From positions 186,001-250,000 of the forward strand of contig JAIVFI010000005.1 of NCBI GenBank assembly GCA_025558095.1: DNA of 64,000 bases, written 5' to 3'. This document shows positions 2,405 through 61,550 of this stretch, one piece after another. How positions within the stretch are numbered: the stretch's first letter is position 1; each line of letters begins with the position of its first letter. Source of the stretch: Hyaloraphidium curvatum SAG 235-1. Taxonomy: Eukaryota > Fungi > Monoblepharomycota. Made by a program: the position numbers and the translations under genes. The notes under the pieces were generated by a model, which saw nothing but the letters and a program-made list of their open reading frames with translations, was not told the DNA's origin and ran no database searches.

Positions 2405-2465
2405 GCAAAGGGGCTGCTGGCATGGGAAGAACGATGAAGGTAGACATAGAGTTTCAATTCGGTGC

Positions 2466-3785
2466 TCAATTCTTGTCTCTACGACCTGCGCCGAACTTCG
2501 CTTCCATTTCCTGCCTTGCAATCCAAGCAGCATTTGCTTGCGGCGCCTCCACATCCGACTTCCTCACAATCTCACCTCTCCGTACCGACTTCTTCAATCG
2601 CACACCGTGCGCGAGCCCGATCGGCAGCGTGCCCTCGTGCGAGGCAAGTGCCGATGGCACGAGGCGACCGTAAACCGTCCAACCTCCCTCTCCGTCGAGC
2701 ATCTCGCCTGCATTCAGATCCTTCTTGGCCACAGATGCCACGTCCCCGAGCCACGACCTCGCCTGCCCAGTGGGCTCGCCACGCAGCGCGGCGTTGAGCA
2801 CGCTGATGCCCAGCTCGAGGCCGATCAGGTGGAACGGTTTGTACATCGCCGCATACCATCCGCATGGGCTCGTTCGGAGGCCGTACTGCTTGAAGCATGC
2901 GGCAGCGTAGCTGTTGGGAGCGCGGAAGACGGCAAAGACGCCCCAGCGCAGGTCGTTGGGGACTTCGCGCCCGTCGCGATAAAGAGACGATACGACCTCG
3001 ACAGTCCCTGTGCGCTCAAGCATGCCGCCAGCCTCCTTGGGTACAAGCACGGAGGCCAACGACTCCGCGGGGCACGGAGGAAAGAGTAGTCCGTCGTCGC
3101 GGTGTGGAGGGAGGCCGCACGCATTCGCCACCGCCGCCATCTCGATGGCGCTTTTGGTGCCATCCAAAAAGCTGTTGAACATCTGAGAATTCATACCGGC
3201 CTTTTTGGCCTCCTCCGAAGAGAGGCCGTAGTGTTTCCACACCCCGTCGGGTGTCACCTCGTGATACTCGGGCAAGTACTTGGTCCCCTTGCCTGCAGCG
3301 ACGACCTCAAAGCCGGCCGATCGCGCCCAGTCTACGATTTCCGCGATGAGTGCCGGTTGGTCCCCGTATGCCAGCGAGTACACGACGCCGGCGTCCCTGG
3401 CTTCCGCGGCGAGCAGCGGGCCGACCAGACAATCCGCCTCGACGTTCACCATGACGACGTGCTTCCGGTTCCTGAACGCCTCGCGGGCATGGGCGATTCC
3501 CGCGGCCGGGCTGCCCGTGGCCTCCACCACGACGTCCACGTCTTCTCTGGCGGCAAGCTCCGCCCCGGATTTGAGGAATGAAGTCCGGGCCGTGCGCTCC
3601 GAAGACCAGCCCACTTCGCGGACAGCTGCCCGGGCACGCGAAGGATCCAAGTCGGCGATGGCGGTCACTTCCAGGCCACGCGAGGTAGGAACCTGGTTCA
3701 GGAACATGGAGCCAAACTTTCCAGAGCCGATGAGGCCGACCCGAATGGGATTGGCCCTCGAAAGAAGCAGCGATTGAAGGCTCAT
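2466..3785 (-). CDS. NAD(P)-dependent oxidoreductase, homoserine-dehydrogenase-like with C-terminal SAF domain (COG4091), bacterial type
   Basis: Intronless, 439 aa. Rossmann VGLIGSGKFG, VVVEATG, KHVVMVNVEAD, YGDQP, AAGKG, FLDGTKSAIEMAAVANA, and SAF domain AKKDLNAGEMLDGEGG...LPIGLAHG. Confidence 0.9.
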   Translation of the reverse strand: MSLQSLLLSRANPIRVGLIGSGKFGSMFLNQVPTSRGLEVTAIADLDPSRARAAVREVGWSSERTARTSFLKSGAELAAREDVDVVVEATGSPAAGIAHAREAFRNRKHVVMVNVEADCLVGPLLAAEARDAGVVYSLAYGDQPALIAEIVDWARSAGFEVVAAGKGTKYLPEYHEVTPDGVWKHYGLSSEEAKKAGMNSQMFNSFLDGTKSAIEMAAVANACGLPPHRDDGLLFPPCPAESLASVLVPKEAGGMLERTGTVEVVSSLYRDGREVPNDLRWGVFAVFRAPNSYAAACFKQYGLRTSPCGWYAAMYKPFHLIGLELGISVLNAALRGEPTGQARSWLGDVASVAKKDLNAGEMLDGEGGWTVYGRLVPSALASHEGTLPIGLAHGVRLKKSVRRGEIVRKSDVEAPQANAAWIARQEMEAKFGAGRRDKN

Positions 3786-4067
3786 TTCGACCCCTCGTTT
3801 GAAGCACCGTCAAGGGGAAACAAGGTCTTTGAGGGTATCGTCCGATATCGGACCCCTCCAATCTTTGCGAGAGGAAGCTTTCCTTGCCGAACTCCCTAAG
3901 GTCGAGCGCTGCCTCGCGGTCGTTGTTCGGGTTGACTTCCGCGCAGTTCGCCGCTCGCCACCACCGCCGTCTCCCGCGCACCTCAAAGCTTTCCTGGCCC
4001 TTGAGGGGCTCGTAAAGAAGCTTGACATCGTTTTCCACATCTTTTGAACTCTGCGCCGTCCGCCGCC

Positions 4068-5283
4068 ATGGCTCCCGCACTGAGCGAGGCCCAGCTGAAG
4101 CAGTTTTCGGAAGAGGGCTGGCTGCTCATCCCCAACGTCTTCTCGCCCACCGAATGCGAGCTGCTCCGGCGCGAGGCCGAGGCCATCTACTCGCAGCAGC
4201 GGCAGGAGATATTCCGGGAGAAGAGCGGGGCGCCGCGGACGGCCTTCGCCGCTCACACGTACAATACCGCTTTCGGAGCTCTGGGGAGGGACGGGAGGCT
4301 GCTGGCACCCGTCGAGCAGATTTTCGGGGAGAGGACTTACATGGTTAGGATCCGGCTGCAGAATGGAGGCCAGCTATTGGGCAGGAGCCGGCGGCGTGGC
4401 CGATTCGTGGCACTGGAACTGACAACGCCCTCTCTCCCAGCACCAGTTCAAAATCAACGCCAAGGCGGCTTTCACTGGAGAAGTCTGGCAGTGGCATCAG
4501 GTCTGTGTGTCGATGTTGCCCTTTCGCAGCTCCAGGATTACTCACGCTCGATCTCGCACACTTCTTTCCTTTGAACGACTCCTCTCCTCTGTGAACCTCT
4601 TCTCTCTTCTACGAACCTGCTCTTCTCTTCTGCTTATTTTCTGGCGCTCATTTCTGCGGTCCTCGCACCTCCGCCTCATGGTTCGTGCCTGCAGGACTAC
4701 GGCACGTGGCTCCGAGACGATGGAATGCCGGAACCGCGAGCCATGAACATCGCCGTCTTCCTGGATCCGGTCATGGCGATCAACGGACCCCTGATGGTGT
4801 GCACCCTCGCCTGCTTTTCTATCGCGTTCCGAGCTAAAGCTTCCCCAGCTCATCCCCCGCTCGCACCGCGCCGGCAACCTCAAAGCCGGCCACGACCGCT
4901 CGACCACCAACTACCCCCTCTGGACGCTCGACGAAGGCGACGTCGCCCGCCTCGCGGACGAGGGCGGCATTGTCGCGCCCACCGGCGCCGCGGGCTCGGT
5001 GCTCCTCTTCCACGGGAACCTCGTGGTGCGCCCCGCCCCGGCTTCCCCGCTTGACCCGTGCTCACGCCCCGTCCCGCAGCACGGCTCGGCACCCAACATC
5101 ACCCCGTACCCCCGCCGCATCGTCTACCTCACCCTCAACGCCGTGTCGAACCACATCCGCACCCCCACGCGGCCCGACTGGATCGCGCACAGGGACTTTG
5201 CGCCGATACAGCACGGGCCGCCGGGGGAGCTGGAGGCGATGGCCAGGGCGGGAGGGGCCGCGGGGCCGGAGGCGAGGCTGTGA
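4068..5283 (+). CDS. Fe(II)/2-oxoglutarate dioxygenase, PhyH/ectoine-hydroxylase/proline-hydroxylase-like, with C-terminal PTS1 (ARL)
   Basis: Exons 4068-4343, 4441-4500, 4695-4796, 4849-5025 and 5080-5283, all GT-AG. The spliced protein reads YMHQFKINAK..WQWHQDYGTW..DGMPEPRAMN..NGPLMLIPRSH..GSVLLFHGNLVHGSAPNITPYPR, giving the HxD...H triad plus the 2OG-binding Arg. Confidence 0.9.
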
Positions 5284-6088
5284 TGGGTGCGGCCGCCGGG
5301 GGGGAATCGTTGCGAGGTTCTTGCAGGATTCTGTGTCGTTCGGGATGCAACGTGCAATCGAAAAGCCCACGTCTACTCTCCTTCTTGACGAGTCAACGAT
5401 CGTTCGTCGCAATCTTTTGATTGCAGGCGTATGTGGCCGGCCAGGATGCCGTCGAGGCAGGCATGCCGCAGATTGTTGCGGGCGCAACATCCCGCACCCG
5501 CAACTCTGCCGCAACGCCAAGCCTCCCGGTCCGGCCACTCGGAGCTACATCCTCGCGTTTCTCGGCCGCCAGAACCCGCAGCTTCCTGCCGTGCGGAGTT
5601 TTCGCGGCGTCCCTGACTTGCTGAGCGGGCGGCTCGTAAAACCCCCCTCGGCCCGAGCGGGCGGAAGGCCCTTCGTCGGCCGCGGGAGGAGGCCTGCGGC
5701 CCGCGCGACGTCGAATTGGAAGTTCGAATTCGATGCCTGCGCATTCGCGCCGCATGAATTTGCATGGGCGGGCCGCGGACGGGGGGCCGGAACGACCGCC
5801 TGCGGCGTACCTCCCGCCCGCCCGACTCCGGCGCCGGAACGCGCCTCCCGGACCCTGCGGACGGCCCTGGACAGCTTCACGGACAGCTCCGGACATCTCC
5901 TTGACCGCGAATGACCGAGTGCTATTATATATGTGATGGTGCCACTTGACTTTGTCGATGACATGCAGGCCCTTTTGCGTCGCCGGCAACACAGAGTCTA
6001 TCGTGCCGCGCATGCGCCTTGATCCTCCTCCATTCCATTAGTTACCCCAGCAGTCACAAACCCAAAACGGAGCTGCGAAAAAGAAAGC

Positions 6089-14590: not shown

Positions 14591-17242
14591 CTACATCCTC
14601 GGGTTCGCCCCGCCCGTCGAGCCTTCCTGCCCCCGGCCGTCGAGCTCCATAGGGTCCCCTCCGCGCTCCACCGTCACCACCCTCCCGCGCCTCCCGTCGG
14701 GCGCGAAACACGCCAGTGATGCCCTCGCCCCTTGCACCCGCACTGGCCCGCCGTAAAGCGGGTCCGACCGTCCGGGATCGAGTCCGTCGGTGCGGTACCT
14801 GATTTCGCACGGCACATCCACGTTGGCGTGCAGCACGCCGTCCTGGATGACCGCCCCCGGGACGGGGGCGCGGTACCGCCACGGTCCACCCCCGCCTGCG
14901 GCAGCGTATGCACCGAACACATCCAGCCGGGGCATCTCCCTCCCCGCAACTCGCGCCGCAAACTCCCTCCACCCGCGCGCCCGCGCTTCACGGTCCCAGC
15001 TCTCGATGGGATCGCTCCCCCACGCCCGCTCGGCAATGGCGAGCAGCCTGGGCATGAGCATGTGCTCGAGCCGCTCCGCGCTCCGCACGAGCTCGCTCCA
15101 CAGCTGCGCCTGCACGCCGACGACGTTGCGCCGCCCGGATTCGGTGAGCCGTTCCAGCCGTTCGACGGTGCCGGGGCGGAGGTCCTGCCCGTATAGCGTC
15201 TTTTCCGGCGGGTCGGCGAAGAGGTCCAGGGGCGAAAAGTCCCAGGCGTTCCGGAGCGACGTGAACGCTCCCCAATACAATCCAGGCTCAAGCGGGTTCT
15301 TTTCGTACGCGAAATCGAGGTATGCGTACGGCCCGGAGCAGAGCACGATCGGAAACCCCGCATTAGCGAGGCGATACCCGAGGTCCTCGGCGCCGCTACC
15401 CCAAATGGTGTTCCACACGCAAGCAACGGGCGGCCGGCCTCCCAGCAGCGCCCGATTGACGATCCGCCGGCGCTTGCCGCCTTCTTCGGCGTCGGTGACG
15501 GCGATCTCCTCCCACCCCGCCGTCCGCTGGATCCCCATCTCGCTGCATATGGAAATCACCTGCCCCCAAAACCCGTCCAGCAGTTCCCTCAGCGAGCAAC
15601 CCCTCCGCCGCAGCTCCTCGAGAACCAGCGGGTCCCTTTCCCACGCCCCGGCGGCGACCTCGTCCCCGCCGAGGTGCACCATCTCCAGCTCCGCACCGGC
15701 TTCGTTCCAGATCGCTCTCAGTTCGCGAAGAACGTGTCGTACGAAGCGGAGCACCGATGGCCGCGCAATACACATGACGTTATCGCGGAAGGACTGCGCC
15801 GAGGAGTAGACCGAGGCGTCCCCCGGACTCGAGAGCAGGTACTCTTCGGCCTCCTCCCGCGACCCGCCCCGAGCGAGGATGTTGTGCGCGCGGGCTTCCA
15901 TCGCCCGCATCGCCGCCCTCGCGTGGCCCGGCATCTCCACCTCGGGCACAACCCGAATGTGCCTCCTCTTCGCCTCGGCCACCAGCCGCACCGCATCCGC
16001 GCGGGTCAAGAAACCGGTCCCCGGGGCGCGCGGGAACGGCCCCGACCCTTGCGCGGGTGGCAGCGCCGCCCGGGGATCCACGACCCCCGCGTGCGACCGC
16101 ACGGCGCCGACCGAGGTGAGTTCCTCCAGCCCGGGAATTTCGATCCTCCATCCCTCGTCGTCCGAAAAATGGAGCTGCAGCACCGAGAGCTTGTACAGCG
16201 CCATGGCGTCCAGCGCGCGCAAGAGGGTCGGGAGGGGGTGGAAGTTGCGCGAAATGTCGAGGTGCAGGCCGCGGTACCCGAAACGGGGCTCGTCTGAGAT
16301 GCGGATGGGGGCGAGGTCCGCCGCGGAGGATGCGGTGGCGGGGTGGAGCGCGTTGCCGGCGAGCTGGACGAGGGTGGTGCAGGCGCGGAAGGCGCCCGAT
16401 GGGGACAGGGCCTCCAGGCGGGCGTTGGCGGCCGAGACTGAGATCTCGTAGGCTTCCGGGTTGCGGTCCGGGTGCGAGTCGTTGGCCACGAGCTCGATCG
16501 GAGGTTCCTTGTCGGCGGCCTGGGGCGGCGAGCTCGACACGCGCAGCGGGGGGGCACCGAGCAGCCTGCCGAGAACCTCGGCCAGGTACTTTGCCTCCTC
16601 CTCGAACGTCGGGGCGCACACAATCAACGTCCCCTTCGTGAGCCGAAATGGCGCTCCCCGCTCGAGGCGCCAGTGCTTGGGCTTGGGCGTCACGGGGCAG
16701 ATCTCCTCCGGGGGCAGCGCACCCCGCGTGTTGGCCTCGTTGGTAGCGTACCGCAACTCGGCCGTAACCGCCGGCACCCCGTCGCGCGGGCCGCGGAGCA
16801 GCTGCTCGCGGCGCGAAAAGGGCGCCACCTTGGGCTCGCCGATGTCGACCACCGTGCCGTCCGGGAAGGCAAGGTAGAAGCCCGAGGGCGCGTCGGTTTC
16901 CGAGATGGAGAAGAAGGAGACGGCGAAGCGGGCGGCCAAGGTCTCGCCGGGGCGAAGCTCGAACGCATCCGGGTGCGCGGGGGACAGTCTGCAGAAGTCC
17001 CCATTGATGTGGGCGGCGACCAACGCGTGGCGGTTCGGCGGCACCGGGCGAGCAGGCGGCACGGCGTAGAGGTCCGCGGCGGGCGGCGCCGCGGAGGGCG
17101 TCCGCATCGACGAGAAGAGGAGGTCGAACCTTCCGGAGAGCGGGTCGGCGGACGCGTTCGTCAGCCGCACTTCCACGATGAAGGGGGCGCCGGGCAGCGG
17201 TGAGGCGTTCGTCTCGCATTCGAACTCGACGGAGAACGCCAT
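14591..17242 (-). CDS. beta-N-acetylhexosaminidase/chitobiase, GH20, bacterial-type domain architecture
   Basis: Intronless, about 883 aa. DEPRFGYRGLHLDISRNF, HFSDDEGWRIEIPGL, PEVEMPGHARAA, catalytic HLGGDEV, YLDFAY, GVQAQLWSE and PRLLAIAERAW. N-terminal CHB_HEX-like region (HINGDFCRLSP) and C-terminal IRYRTDG domain. Confidence 0.92.
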   Translation of the reverse strand: MAFSVEFECETNASPLPGAPFIVEVRLTNASADPLSGRFDLLFSSMRTPSAAPPAADLYAVPPARPVPPNRHALVAAHINGDFCRLSPAHPDAFELRPGETLAARFAVSFFSISETDAPSGFYLAFPDGTVVDIGEPKVAPFSRREQLLRGPRDGVPAVTAELRYATNEANTRGALPPEEICPVTPKPKHWRLERGAPFRLTKGTLIVCAPTFEEEAKYLAEVLGRLLGAPPLRVSSSPPQAADKEPPIELVANDSHPDRNPEAYEISVSAANARLEALSPSGAFRACTTLVQLAGNALHPATASSAADLAPIRISDEPRFGYRGLHLDISRNFHPLPTLLRALDAMALYKLSVLQLHFSDDEGWRIEIPGLEELTSVGAVRSHAGVVDPRAALPPAQGSGPFPRAPGTGFLTRADAVRLVAEAKRRHIRVVPEVEMPGHARAAMRAMEARAHNILARGGSREEAEEYLLSSPGDASVYSSAQSFRDNVMCIARPSVLRFVRHVLRELRAIWNEAGAELEMVHLGGDEVAAGAWERDPLVLEELRRRGCSLRELLDGFWGQVISICSEMGIQRTAGWEEIAVTDAEEGGKRRRIVNRALLGGRPPVACVWNTIWGSGAEDLGYRLANAGFPIVLCSGPYAYLDFAYEKNPLEPGLYWGAFTSLRNAWDFSPLDLFADPPEKTLYGQDLRPGTVERLERLTESGRRNVVGVQAQLWSELVRSAERLEHMLMPRLLAIAERAWGSDPIESWDREARARGWREFAARVAGREMPRLDVFGAYAAAGGGGPWRYRAPVPGAVIQDGVLHANVDVPCEIRYRTDGLDPGRSDPLYGGPVRVQGARASLACFAPDGRRGRVVTVERGGDPMELDGRGQEGSTGGANPRM

Positions 17243-17534
17243 CTCGGAGGAATCTGCGGGGGGCGCGTTCTTCCTCTTCTCGAGCTCGTCAGGTCGAGAG
17301 CACCGATCGGTGCCCTCCCACTCGAGCCGCCCGCCGATCGGCATCAGATTTATTCAGCCGTTCATCGCAGCATCCACCGTCAGAGATTGAAGTGCCTTTC
17401 CGGGTTGCTGGCGCCGGGTGGTTGCTTGCGCGCCAAGTCAAGCGGCATCCTCGGGGTGGCGAAGCCCCCCAGTCACATCCGCTTTACCGACGCCGTGTCG
17501 CAGCCGCTGCCGTTTCCGGCGGCCGCAGCGAACG

Positions 17535-58368: not shown

Positions 58369-61300
58369 ATGAGCGGCAAGAAGCAGGCCACGCTGGCGTG
58401 AGTGCGCGCCGTCGGGCACCGCCCGCCGCGCATGGCCGCGCGCGTCGCCGCGGCTGCACTCCGCGCGGCGCTGCCACGGACCTTCTCACGCGCGCCGCCC
58501 CTCCGGCCCCCCGTCCCGCCGCTGCGCCGCCCGCCGTGCAGGGCCTTCTTCGGCGGGGGCGCCGCGAAGGCGAAGGAGCCGCCCACGCCCGCAAAGGCCC
58601 CGAGCGACGGGGGGAAGAGCTCCAGCGAGGACGACGACGACGTGGTCGCCAAGCCGAGCAAGTGTCGCCCGTTTCCGCTCCTGTGCATCGGGATCTAACG
58701 CGGAAAATCCCAGAATCGCGTCGTCTCAAGCGGCCCAAGGCCGTCGCCTCGTCCGACTCGGAGCCCGAGCCCAAGCCCGCCCCCTCCGAGGGCACGACCC
58801 CGGAGAAGGAGAACGGCCAGGACAACGGCAGGAAAAAGCGCAAGAAGCGCGACGATGGCGAGGGAGATGGCGGAGAGCGGAGGCAGTCGGCCGCGGAGAT
58901 GGACCTGGACGATGCGCTGGACCGCATCGGCACCCCGGGCTCGGTGGCGTCGAGGGGCAAGGTGGCGGCGATGAGGCCGAAATCGGCGCCTCCGTCGGCG
59001 GGCCCGCAGGAGGACGAGGAAGGCAAGGAAGCCGATGCTGCACCGGCGCACGAGGCTTCCCCCGCCAAGCGTGCCCGGTCGCTGTCGAGGTCGCGAACCC
59101 CGGAGCCCGCCGCCCAAGCCGAGGATGCGGAGCCGGAAGCCAAAGCGCCCTCCCGAGCTCCGTCCCCGAAGAAGGAGGTCAAGAAGGCGCCGGCAAAGAA
59201 CGCGCTCGAATCCATGATGGCCGCTTCCGCCAAGAAGGGCAAAGGCAAGGAGGCGCCCGCGGCGTCGTCCTCGAAAAAGGCGGACAAGGACGCGGACGAG
59301 GACGGGCACGAGGCAGCGGACGACATGGACGCTGAAGCCGCGGCCCAACAGTGCGTTTCGCTCTTTGGCTTCTCCGTTCGGCCACTGATGCATAACACCG
59401 GTAGAGCTCTCAAGTCCCTGGGAAGCCAGACGGCCGAATGGAAGCAGGGCGAAAAGGTGCCCTACGCTGCCCTCTGCCGCATGTTCGAGAAGAACGAGGC
59501 CACCACCAAGCGCCTGGAAAAGATCGACATCACGCGGTCCTTCTTCCAATCCGTGTTCCAGCTGTCGCCCGAGAACCTGCTGGAGACGGTCTACCTCTGC
59601 TTGAACAAGGTTTGCTGTGTTGTATGGGGCGACTGGCGCAGCTTGCTAACCGCCAGCCAACGCCAGATCGCACCGGACTACGAGGGCCACGAACTCGGTG
59701 TCGGCGTCACCATCCTCATGAAAGCCATCGCCGGTGCCACGGGCCGCTCGGTCCCGGCGATCAAATCGAGCATGGAGGAGGTCGGCGACCTGGGCGAGGT
59801 CGCGGAAACATCGCGGAACAACCAGCGCACCATGTTCAAGCCCAAGCCGCTCACGGTGCCGCAGGTCTTCAAGACGCTGAAGGAGATCGCCAGCTTCTCG
59901 GGGCAAAAGTCGCAGGAAAAGAAGGTCGAGAAGATCCAGTCCATGATCGCGGCGTGCAACGGCAGCGAGGCCAAATTCCTCATCCGCTCGCTCGAGGGAA
60001 AGCTGCGCATCGGGCTTGCGGAAAAGACGGTGCTCGTCGCCCTCGGCCATGCTGCCGTGCTGGCGCGGCCCGAGAACAAGAAGCTCTCGGCGGACAAGCT
60101 GGTCGCCAAGCTCGCCGCGGCGGGCGAAACCATCAGCGCCGTCTTCACCGAGATGCCGAGCTACGACCGAATCGTACCCGTGCTCCTCGACAAGGGCATC
60201 GATGCGCTGGCCGACGAGTGCCACCTCACACCCGGCATCCCGCTCAAGCCCATGCTCGCGCACCCGACCAAGGCCATCACGGACGTGCTGAACCGCTTCG
60301 AGGGGATCAAGTTCACGTGCGAGTGGAAATACGACGGCGAGCGTGCGCAGGTGCACCGGCTCGAGGACGGCAGCACCTTCATCTACTCGCGCAACTCGGA
60401 GAACCTGACCCCCAAGTACCCCGAGGTCCTGGAGCGCATCGGCAACGCGGCCAAGGAGGGCGTCAAGTCCTTTGTGCTCGACTGCGAATGCGTCGCCTGG
60501 GACCGGGAGAAGAAGCAGATCCGCCCGTTCCAGGCCCTGAGCACGCGCAAGCGCAAGGACGTCAACATCGCCGACATCGAGATCCAAGTCGTCCTGTTTG
60601 CGTTCGACATTCTCTACCTGGACGGGGACATCCTGATCCGGAAGCCGCTCGAGGAGCGCAGGCGGATCCTGCACGAAAACTTCCGCGAAGTCGAGGGCGA
60701 GTTTGCGTTCGCGCAGTACGACGACGGGCACACCGTGGAGGAGATCCAGCGCATCCTGGACGAGTCGATTGCCGGCGGTTGCGAGGGGCTGATGGTCAAG
60801 ACGCTCGACAAGGAGGCGAGCTACGAGCCCAGCAAGCGGTCGCGGAACTGGCTCAAGGTTTGGTGCTGCAGCTCACTTCGTCTGCACAGACTCACCATTG
60901 GTGAGCAGGTCAAGAAGGATTACCTTGCCGACAACAAAGGCGGCATCGGGGACAGCCTGGACCTGGTTGTCATTGGCGGATACCATGGACGCGGCAAGCG
61001 TACCGGAGGTTACGGAGGATTCCTTCTTGCGTGCTACGATTCCGACAACGAGCAGTACCAGACCATCTGCAAGGTGACTCCGCCGCAGGCGACTGTCATT
61101 CGCCCTGCTGACCGTTCTTCCAGATTGGCACCGGCTTTTCGGACGAGGACCTCAGCAAGCACACCAACTTTTTCAAGGAGCACGTTATCGACATCCCGCG
61201 GCCCTACTACATCTACTCGGACGATCCGCGCGTCGTTCCTGACGTGTGGTTCGAGCCCGTCCAGGTGTGGGAAGTCAAGTGTGCCGATCTGTCCATCTCC

Positions 61301-61550
61301 CCCGTGCACAAGGCCGGAATCGGCGAGGTGGGCTTGCCGCAGGCTCGCTGCGGAGTTTCAAAGCGACTCACGAATTGTTTTTCAGGTCCACGGCGGCAAG
61401 GGAATCTCGCTCCGTTTCCCGCGCTTCATCCGCATCCGTGACGACAAGGGCCCGGAGGATGCGACAACGGCGGATCAGGTGGCCGAGATGTACCGCAGCC
61501 AGGCGGTCGTCAGCAACGGCAAAGGAGGAATCAACGACGTGGATTACTAG
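58369..61550 (+). CDS. LIG1: DNA ligase I (ATP-dependent)
   Basis: Exon 1 [10 protein letters not shown] plus AFF forms a PIP box. [29 protein letters not shown], active-site [44 protein letters not shown] and [15 protein letters not shown]. Multi-exon. Confidence 0.96.

Follow-up and report, generated by a model that had tools for sequence, protein, structure and literature searches.

The 64,000-nucleotide stretch of Hyaloraphidium curvatum DNA analysed here (the window) carries two adjoining genes of bacterial type that diverge from a 282-bp spacer: gene A, for a DRL/DXR-II-like NAD(P) oxidoreductase with a C-terminal SAF domain, and gene B, for a PhyH-type Fe/2-oxoglutarate hydroxylase. 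Their products are 65–75% identical to proteobacterial, mainly alphaproteobacterial, proteins, and the pair is truly integrated in a fungal chromosome. We consider it likely that a fragment of a bacterial operon was captured, that one gene was then inverted, that the hydroxylase gene gained introns and a C-terminal A-R-L, and that the two enzymes are used to hydroxylate and then oxidise a substrate, by a mechanism that we infer.

Gene structure and integration in the fungal chromosome

The original prediction described this divergent arrangement, with gene A intronless and gene B interrupted by four introns; open reading frames, Pfam matches and the sequence itself bear out the first part, and a transcript contig the second. 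The features of the locus are as follows.

2466–3785, minus strand: gene A, DRL/DXR-II-like NAD(P) oxidoreductase with C-terminal SAF domain; intronless coding sequence of 439 aa plus stop (open reading frame list)
2465–5826, no strand assigned: spliced transcript contig of 2986 nt over gene A, the spacer and spliced gene B (one public RNA run)
3786–4067, no strand assigned: spacer of 282 bp between the divergent start codons, presumed promoter region (sequence)
4068–5283, plus strand: gene B, PhyH-type Fe/2-oxoglutarate hydroxylase, five exons and four introns, ATG at 4068
4068–4343, plus strand: exon 1, 92 codons; PhyH 22.9 bits; bacterial PhyH residues 1–90; transcript joint 4342/4440
4344–4440, plus strand: intron 1, 97 nt, GT..AG, phase 0; absent from the transcript contig, unique in the genome
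4441–4500, plus strand: exon 2, 20 codons, ending in W-H-Q (H, first iron ligand); PhyH residues 91–110; 15/15 conserved columns
4501–4694, plus strand: intron 2, 194 nt, GT..AG, phase 0; absent from the transcript contig, unique in the genome
4695–4796, plus strand: exon 3, 34 codons, opening with D-Y-G-T-W (D, second iron ligand); 81–86% identity, PhyH residues 111–144
4797–4848, plus strand: intron 3, 52 nt, GT..AG, phase 0; absent from the transcript contig
4849–5025, plus strand: exon 4, 59 codons; bacterial PhyH residues 145–203
5026–5079, plus strand: intron 4, 54 nt, GT..AG, phase 0, in frame and stop-free; absent from the transcript contig, an 18-residue gap against every bacterial homologue
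5080–5283, plus strand: exon 5, 67 codons plus stop, the first codon being the distal iron His; alignment H-G-S-A-x-N-I-T-P-Y
5272–5280, plus strand, with the stop to 5283: A-R-L tail, PTS1-like (peroxisomal targeting signal type 1), fitting [SAC]-[KRH]-[LM]

At the predicted introns of gene B the transcript contig skips 97, 194, 52 and 54 nt, each time with GT..AG ends, and over gene A and the spacer it is continuous; the four introns are therefore real, the in-frame intron 4 included, and gene A is intronless. Depth within the introns is lower, not zero, so that an unspliced form or DNA was also present in the run. These RNA data take the form of unstranded contigs, without transcript starts, strand, levels or co-regulation, and a contig spanning gene A and gene B does not equal one transcript. 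Head-to-head orientation and a 282-bp spacer give the pair the geometry of a bidirectional promoter pair (<1 kb), and a search of the spacer for relics of a bacterial promoter or terminator returned none, with no sigma-70-like site.

Downstream, gene A is convergent with an alpha/beta-hydrolase gene (842–2404, Abhydrolase_3), the two stop codons lying 61 bp apart. Two transcript contigs stop here, at 2462 and 2465, and adapter sequence (Illumina) is attached to the second, which suggests a sharp RNA end right at the gene A stop codon.

Intron 2 falls within the HxD iron motif, as had been claimed, cutting W-H-Q/D-Y between the codons for Q and D (H 4495–4497, Q 4498–4500, D 4695–4697). The codon for the distal His (5080–5082) directly follows intron 4, whose retention would add 18 residues just before this iron-binding residue. 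The exon ends that precede the introns are of the type ATG, CAG or GTG. An introner-like origin of the introns was considered and rejected, introns 1 and 2 having no other copy in the 32-Mb genome.

All comparisons of gene B were run exon by exon, or through the open frame 4849–5280 that includes intron 4, and never on joined exons. When three bacterial PhyH proteins were aligned to the window by tblastn, their residues 3–247 were tiled by the five exons with no residue lost or doubled. Matches of single exons to the PhyH family, and to the model for ectoine hydroxylase, follow one another in the correct order; in the family-model scan exon 1 scores 22.9 bits (PF05721 cut-off 22) and exon 4 scores 17.1, and the 267-aa bacterial PhyH proteins carry PF05721. 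The iron triad HxD...H is present, in columns that are invariant in 16 bacterial orthologues (H109, D111 and H204 of orthologue A1). Among columns at least 95% conserved in bacteria, gene B keeps 135 of 152, the triad included, and gene A keeps 182 of 191. Because nearly all bacterially conserved columns are thus retained, both proteins are, as far as sequence can indicate, likely to be active.

The host belongs to the Monoblepharidomycetes, which agrees with the zoosporic-fungus lineage guessed in the original prediction, and has a genome of 31.9 Mb in 55 contigs. A DNA ligase I exon elsewhere in the window (58398–61547) is that of H. curvatum, on the same 937-kb contig, and its next matches are chytrid, monoblepharid, blastoclad and Mortierella-type proteins at 50–60% identity. 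Gene A taken alone looks fully bacterial (intronless, 65–70% identity to bacterial proteins), as bacterial contamination or a chimeric assembly would have it, but there is next to no chance that either explains the pair: the four spliceosomal introns of gene B have been spliced out in RNA, one transcript contig links spliced gene B to gene A, the 937-kb contig holds fungal genes, and the base composition matches that of the neighbours. We exclude contamination because the introns of gene B are spliced in RNA and fungal genes flank the pair.

Composition was also tried as a signal of foreign origin. It proved uninformative, since GC content and GC content at third codon positions of both genes lie within the range of the fungal genes around them, and the GC content of the putative donors is just as high.

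Two further observations concern the host and the window. A DNA ligase on a 19-kb Logan contig (P0122) is 79% identical to the Hyaloraphidium ligase, so that a fairly close relative has already been sequenced. At 14591–17344 the window also contains an intronless open reading frame of 917 aa for a GH20 chitobiase with Glyco_hydro_20b, Glyco_hydro_20 and CHB_HEX_C domains, an architecture of bacterial style.

Bacterial relatives and the probable course of the transfer

Searched against 5.8 billion proteins, gene A returned 8000 matches; among the best 120 of these none besides itself exceeds 70% identity. These 120 lie at 65–70%, and where named they are proteobacterial, mostly alphaproteobacterial, the named relatives being Indioceanicola, Arenibaculum, Azospirillum, Skermanella, Microvirga, Hyphomicrobiales and Acetobacteraceae. 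In an Atlas search with gene A the nearest clusters were all bacterial DRL. The most similar matches, P0019 and P0055, sit in ordinary bacterial contexts, and in P0055 a PhyH gene lies directly upstream of the oxidoreductase gene on the same strand.

The same arrangement, with a PhyH gene of 266–267 aa directly upstream, is found in Indioceanicola, Arenibaculum and an Azospirillum metagenome-assembled genome (MAG). A tblastn comparison was made of 83 bacterial loci (80 species genomes plus three looked up first, with up to 5 kb on each side and less on short contigs). In 62 of them the oxidoreductase gene is preceded by PhyH on the same strand, at a distance of <200 nt in 43 and of 265–3028 nt in the other 19; no divergent or downstream PhyH occurs among the 83. 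The remaining 21 loci have no PhyH in the sequence around the oxidoreductase, and four of these 21 have <800 nt upstream. The bacterial homologues are thus neighbours and co-directional, as had been proposed, with PhyH first, whereas the GntR regulator said to be often present did not hold up: a GntR/FCD regulator precedes the pair in only 5 loci. Outside the pair the gene content differs between loci (TauD, acyl-CoA ligases, enoyl-CoA hydratase, FAA hydrolase, M20 peptidase, binding proteins), and no consistent pointer to a substrate was found in these neighbourhoods.

Two of the bacterial contexts are of interest in themselves. Just downstream of the oxidoreductase, on the opposite strand, 27 loci carry a TauD/TfdA-family dioxygenase gene (L078:6346–7239 and 26 other Xanthobacteraceae-type loci), possibly a further member of the bacterial pathway that was left behind in the transfer. 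In Indioceanicola profundi a tartronate-semialdehyde-reductase/HIBADH-like gene (L001:7323–8204) shares 4 nt with the end of the oxidoreductase gene; the overlap suggests translational coupling, and the neighbour hints at a hydroxy-acid or semialdehyde intermediate.

Set beside the PhyH and DXR-II-like pairs of Indioceanicola profundi (CP030127.1), Arenibaculum pallidiluteum, and Stellaceae and Xanthobacteraceae MAGs, the fungal proteins are colinear over their full length at 65–75% identity, and adjacency and nearly all conserved residues are common to bacteria and fungus. The bacterial genes are co-directional, intronless, often translationally close and sometimes placed behind a GntR/FCD regulator. 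In contrast, the fungal genes are divergent, with four introns in one of them, an A-R-L tail and no co-transferred regulator.

Adjacency in both kingdoms, similar divergence of the two genes and the same best-matching bacteria make it the most economical course of events, and our best reading, that a fragment of the operon was transferred once and one gene was then inverted. The original prediction had likewise proposed one event, and the same bacteria do best match both proteins, with one inversion needed. An ancestor of H. curvatum would have taken up one piece of proteobacterial DNA carrying a PhyH gene followed by a DXR-II-like oxidoreductase gene. One gene would then have been inverted in the fungus, which from the bacterial order requires inversion of the PhyH gene alone, so that the two came to diverge from the 282-bp spacer, an arrangement that allows each a eukaryotic promoter of its own. 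The hydroxylase gene would have gained four phase-0 spliceosomal introns and the C-terminal A-R-L, the oxidoreductase gene staying intronless. Both genes are intact and transcribed in the fungus.

The medians of identity to bacterial orthologues are 66% and 68% for the two genes, and seven loci of Azospirillales/Stellaceae type (L001, L096, L002, L064, L018, L020 and L072) head both similarity lists. Over 53 bacterial pairs, similarity to gene A and similarity to the PhyH exons are correlated (Spearman 0.52, p 7e-5), a coefficient that shared bacterial phylogeny inflates. This inflation is one of several points that weigh against a single transfer from one donor. Gene A sits on a long branch (0.65–0.75 changes per site) within a polytomy formed by alphaproteobacterial clades; the oxidoreductase fits a Xanthobacteraceae-type clade as well as it fits the Azospirillales/Stellaceae set; and a Xanthobacteraceae placement of PhyH is not rejected by the approximately unbiased (AU) test (p-AU 0.22). 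The four introns of gene B against none in gene A could hint at different ages.

To place the donor, we built a quick tree (82 rows) and a FastTree (120 best matches) and ran AU tests on smaller sets; each of the two larger gene B exon blocks entered the trees as a row of its own. The PhyH exon rows stand next to Indioceanicola and group with the Azospirillales/Stellaceae set (91 in the Shimodaira–Hasegawa-like approximate likelihood ratio test, SH-aLRT). An Azospirillales/Stellaceae placement is not rejected for the oxidoreductase (p-AU 0.54), and none of the 120 best matches breaks the long branch of gene A in the FastTree. Phylogenies had been put forward as the check for a common donor clade; the best-matching genomes do coincide, but the trees and AU tests fix no shared clade. 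A common donor for both genes is compatible with these results and not proven, because the AU tests reject neither placement for either gene. The donor was most likely an alphaproteobacterium, perhaps of the Azospirillales/Stellaceae kind. No more precise donor could be retained, since all trees leave the oxidoreductase without a stable sister.

Two independent bacterial transfers, landing or later brought side by side, would account for the uneven intron load, four against none, and for trees that pin no single donor. We nonetheless regard them as quite improbable: the genes adjoin in 62 of 83 bacterial loci, two single-copy genes would hardly come to lie together by chance in a genome of 32 Mb, and the genes agree in their divergence and in their best-matching genomes. 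The long branches of the fungal sequences could alternatively reflect old, vertically inherited eukaryotic genes lost elsewhere, or a transfer from a eukaryote to bacteria. Either course is still harder to credit, as the arrangement in an operon is a bacterial one; the relatives that bear a name, and all those inspected for gene context, are bacterial; and the fungal sequences fall among proteobacterial orthologues, the fungal oxidoreductase being parted from the gammaproteobacterial group by a branch marked 98*.

Enzyme families, proposed chemistry and possible targeting

On gene A, Pfam places GFO_IDH_MocA at residues 14–112, DRL_cat at 141–325 (189.5 bits, 5.5e-56) and SAF at 352–413. This order of a Rossmann NAD(P) domain, a DRL catalytic domain and SAF matches the build of the DRL/DXR-II-like superfamily (PF21135 DRL_cat), and the three-part build is common to gene A, DXR-II (DRL) of Brucella abortus (3UPL/3UPY) and the DLO1 and DLO2 proteins. 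The G-x-G-x-x-G motif reads G-S-G-K-F-G. Gene A occurs once in the genome, and its product has no extension at either end relative to the bacterial orthologues and no visible targeting signal. It matches B. abortus DRL (DXR-II, PDB 3UPL) with an E-value of 1e-52 over residues 11–418, and is far less similar to it than to the PhyH-linked bacterial orthologues. Fungi make isoprenoids by the mevalonate route; a 1-deoxy-D-xylulose 5-phosphate reductoisomerase role for gene A is therefore unlikely. To our knowledge, no activity has become known for DLO oxidoreductases since they were named in 2013.

Three groups, DXR-II, DLO1 and DLO2, have been distinguished in the DXR-II superfamily; those DLO proteins that were tested failed to rescue a dxr mutant, and the true DXR-II clade has conserved Thr229, His250 and Arg320 (PMC3847144). 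Hosts listed for DLO2 include Bradyrhizobium and Xanthobacter, both of which fit the orthologue group of gene A (PMC3847144). Because of these hosts, and because the DRL match is far weaker than that to the PhyH-linked orthologues, gene A is probably a DLO2-type enzyme. The D-G-S-K-T motif of DRL becomes D-G-T-K-S in gene A, the match between the paper's numbering and the PDB chain being uncertain.

For the hydroxylase, a bacterial PhyH orthologue was compared with solved structures. Its PDB relatives are H11 (5e-63), GriE (4e-48) and EctD (2e-44), and a model of it (predicted local distance difference test score, pLDDT, 73) gives Z values of 23–27 against the H11, GriE and EctD structures and of 19.6 against human PHYH. 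H11 (7E01, 7DZZ, 8H7Y), GriE (5NCH) and EctD (4Q5O, 3EMR) have the same fold and HxD...H triad as the gene B family, and share with it the signature W-H-x-D-[YF]-x-x-W...D-G-M-P and a size of ~265 aa, although identity to the bacterial orthologue is only ~30–42% in the structural alignments. H11 is a trans-3/4-proline hydroxylase and GriE a leucine 5-hydroxylase, and all three, EctD included, act on free amino or imino acids. Ectoine had been named among several possible substrates, but the hydroxylase is nearer H11 and GriE than ectoine hydroxylase. The ectoine hydroxylase equivalog model TIGR02408 has a cut-off of 336.5 bits; the bacterial orthologue reaches 167.8 bits, and the fungal exons reach 36, 21, 18 and 30 bits. 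Judged by these family comparisons, gene B encodes a hydroxylase nearest to the free-amino-acid hydroxylases H11, GriE and EctD and not a true ectoine hydroxylase.

The genome holds a second PhyH gene of the H11/EctD-like kind (G000 C15:299951–300817; L086:1501–2406), with two exons, a short intron and a P-R-L ending. Its identity to the bacterial PhyH probe is 39–49%, H11 is the closest relative with a solved structure (2e-27, second exon), and no DRL-type gene adjoins it, gene A being single-copy.

By analogy with H11, GriE and EctD, the hydroxylase of gene B would add a hydroxyl to a free amino or imino acid, and the homoserine-dehydrogenase-like oxidoreductase of gene A would oxidise the new hydroxyl to a carbonyl (aldehyde or ketone) with NAD(P)+. 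Such a hydroxylate-then-oxidise order is plausible because GriE and GriF provide a documented precedent in the same hydroxylase subfamily: in 4-methylproline biosynthesis GriE makes a hydroxy amino acid, which the NAD+ dehydrogenase GriF oxidises to an aldehyde (PMC5676206). The logic is that proposed for the fungal pair, an Fe/2-oxoglutarate hydroxylase of this subfamily followed by a dehydrogenase. The two cases differ in that GriF is a zinc alcohol dehydrogenase and not of the DRL type of gene A, and in that the griselimycin genes belong to a biosynthetic cluster and do not form a two-gene module. A search of the literature for work linking PhyH with SAF or COG4091 oxidoreductases found none.

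The C-terminus of gene B, put forward as a PTS1 in the original prediction, reads A-R-L-stop at 5272–5283. Of 60 bacterial PhyH proteins and 83 oxidoreductases, none has a PTS1-like tail, and most of the PhyH proteins end in A-A-E. As the bacterial homologues end without such a tripeptide, the A-R-L, on this sequence comparison, arose after the transfer. The genome encodes peroxins (Pex14_N 78.5 bits; Pex2/10/12 125 bits), and A-R-L may direct the hydroxylase to peroxisomes, the oxidoreductase having no visible signal. A split of the pair between peroxisome and cytosol, as suggested by these three residues, is possible; weighing against it, a Glu at −5 (with a Pro at −6) before A-R-L may weaken PTS1 function.

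The tail bears on a further explanation, in which adjacency is a mere relic of the joint transfer and the two enzymes now work separately on unrelated substrates, for instance one in the peroxisome and the other in the cytosol. The PTS1-like tail is found on the hydroxylase only, the oxidoreductase has no PhyH nearby in 21 of 83 bacterial loci and can thus work without an adjacent partner, and the second H11-like PhyH gene of the genome has no oxidoreductase partner. Both genes have been kept intact, adjacent and transcribed, however, and the pair is the only constant part of variable bacterial neighbourhoods, which points to a functional unit; we therefore regard separate use as unlikely and favour joint use of the two enzymes. 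A wider proposal, which we advance only tentatively and hold to be more doubtful than probable, is that the PhyH and DLO2-type pair constitutes a self-sufficient, undescribed two-step route for an amino or imino acid in hundreds of proteobacterial species, of which the fungal genes would be the minimal unit, its first step, which consumes O2 and 2-oxoglutarate, having been moved to peroxisomes.

Place of the pair among transferred genes

A bacterial enterobactin operon has been horizontally transferred into yeasts (bioRxiv 10.1101/399394, PMC10690196), and in Wickerhamiella/Starmerella yeasts, as we propose for the present case, linked genes from a single bacterial operon entered a fungus jointly and have stayed adjacent. 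The H. curvatum pair differs in comprising only two genes, in its early-diverging recipient, in its inversion to a head-to-head order, and in the introns and targeting-like tail gained by one gene. It joins the known transfers of linked genes from bacteria to fungi and is not a new kind of system.

The pair offers a clean example of a bacterial operon fragment turning eukaryotic, with internal controls: of two neighbours that are probably alike in origin and age, one gained nothing, whereas its partner took on a targeting-like tail and four introns. The enzyme pair is conserved in >500 bacterial genomes, and the survival of just these two genes in a fungus suggests that they suffice for a function. 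It thereby constitutes a defined target for substrate screening and a useful pointer to what the DLO oxidoreductases do.

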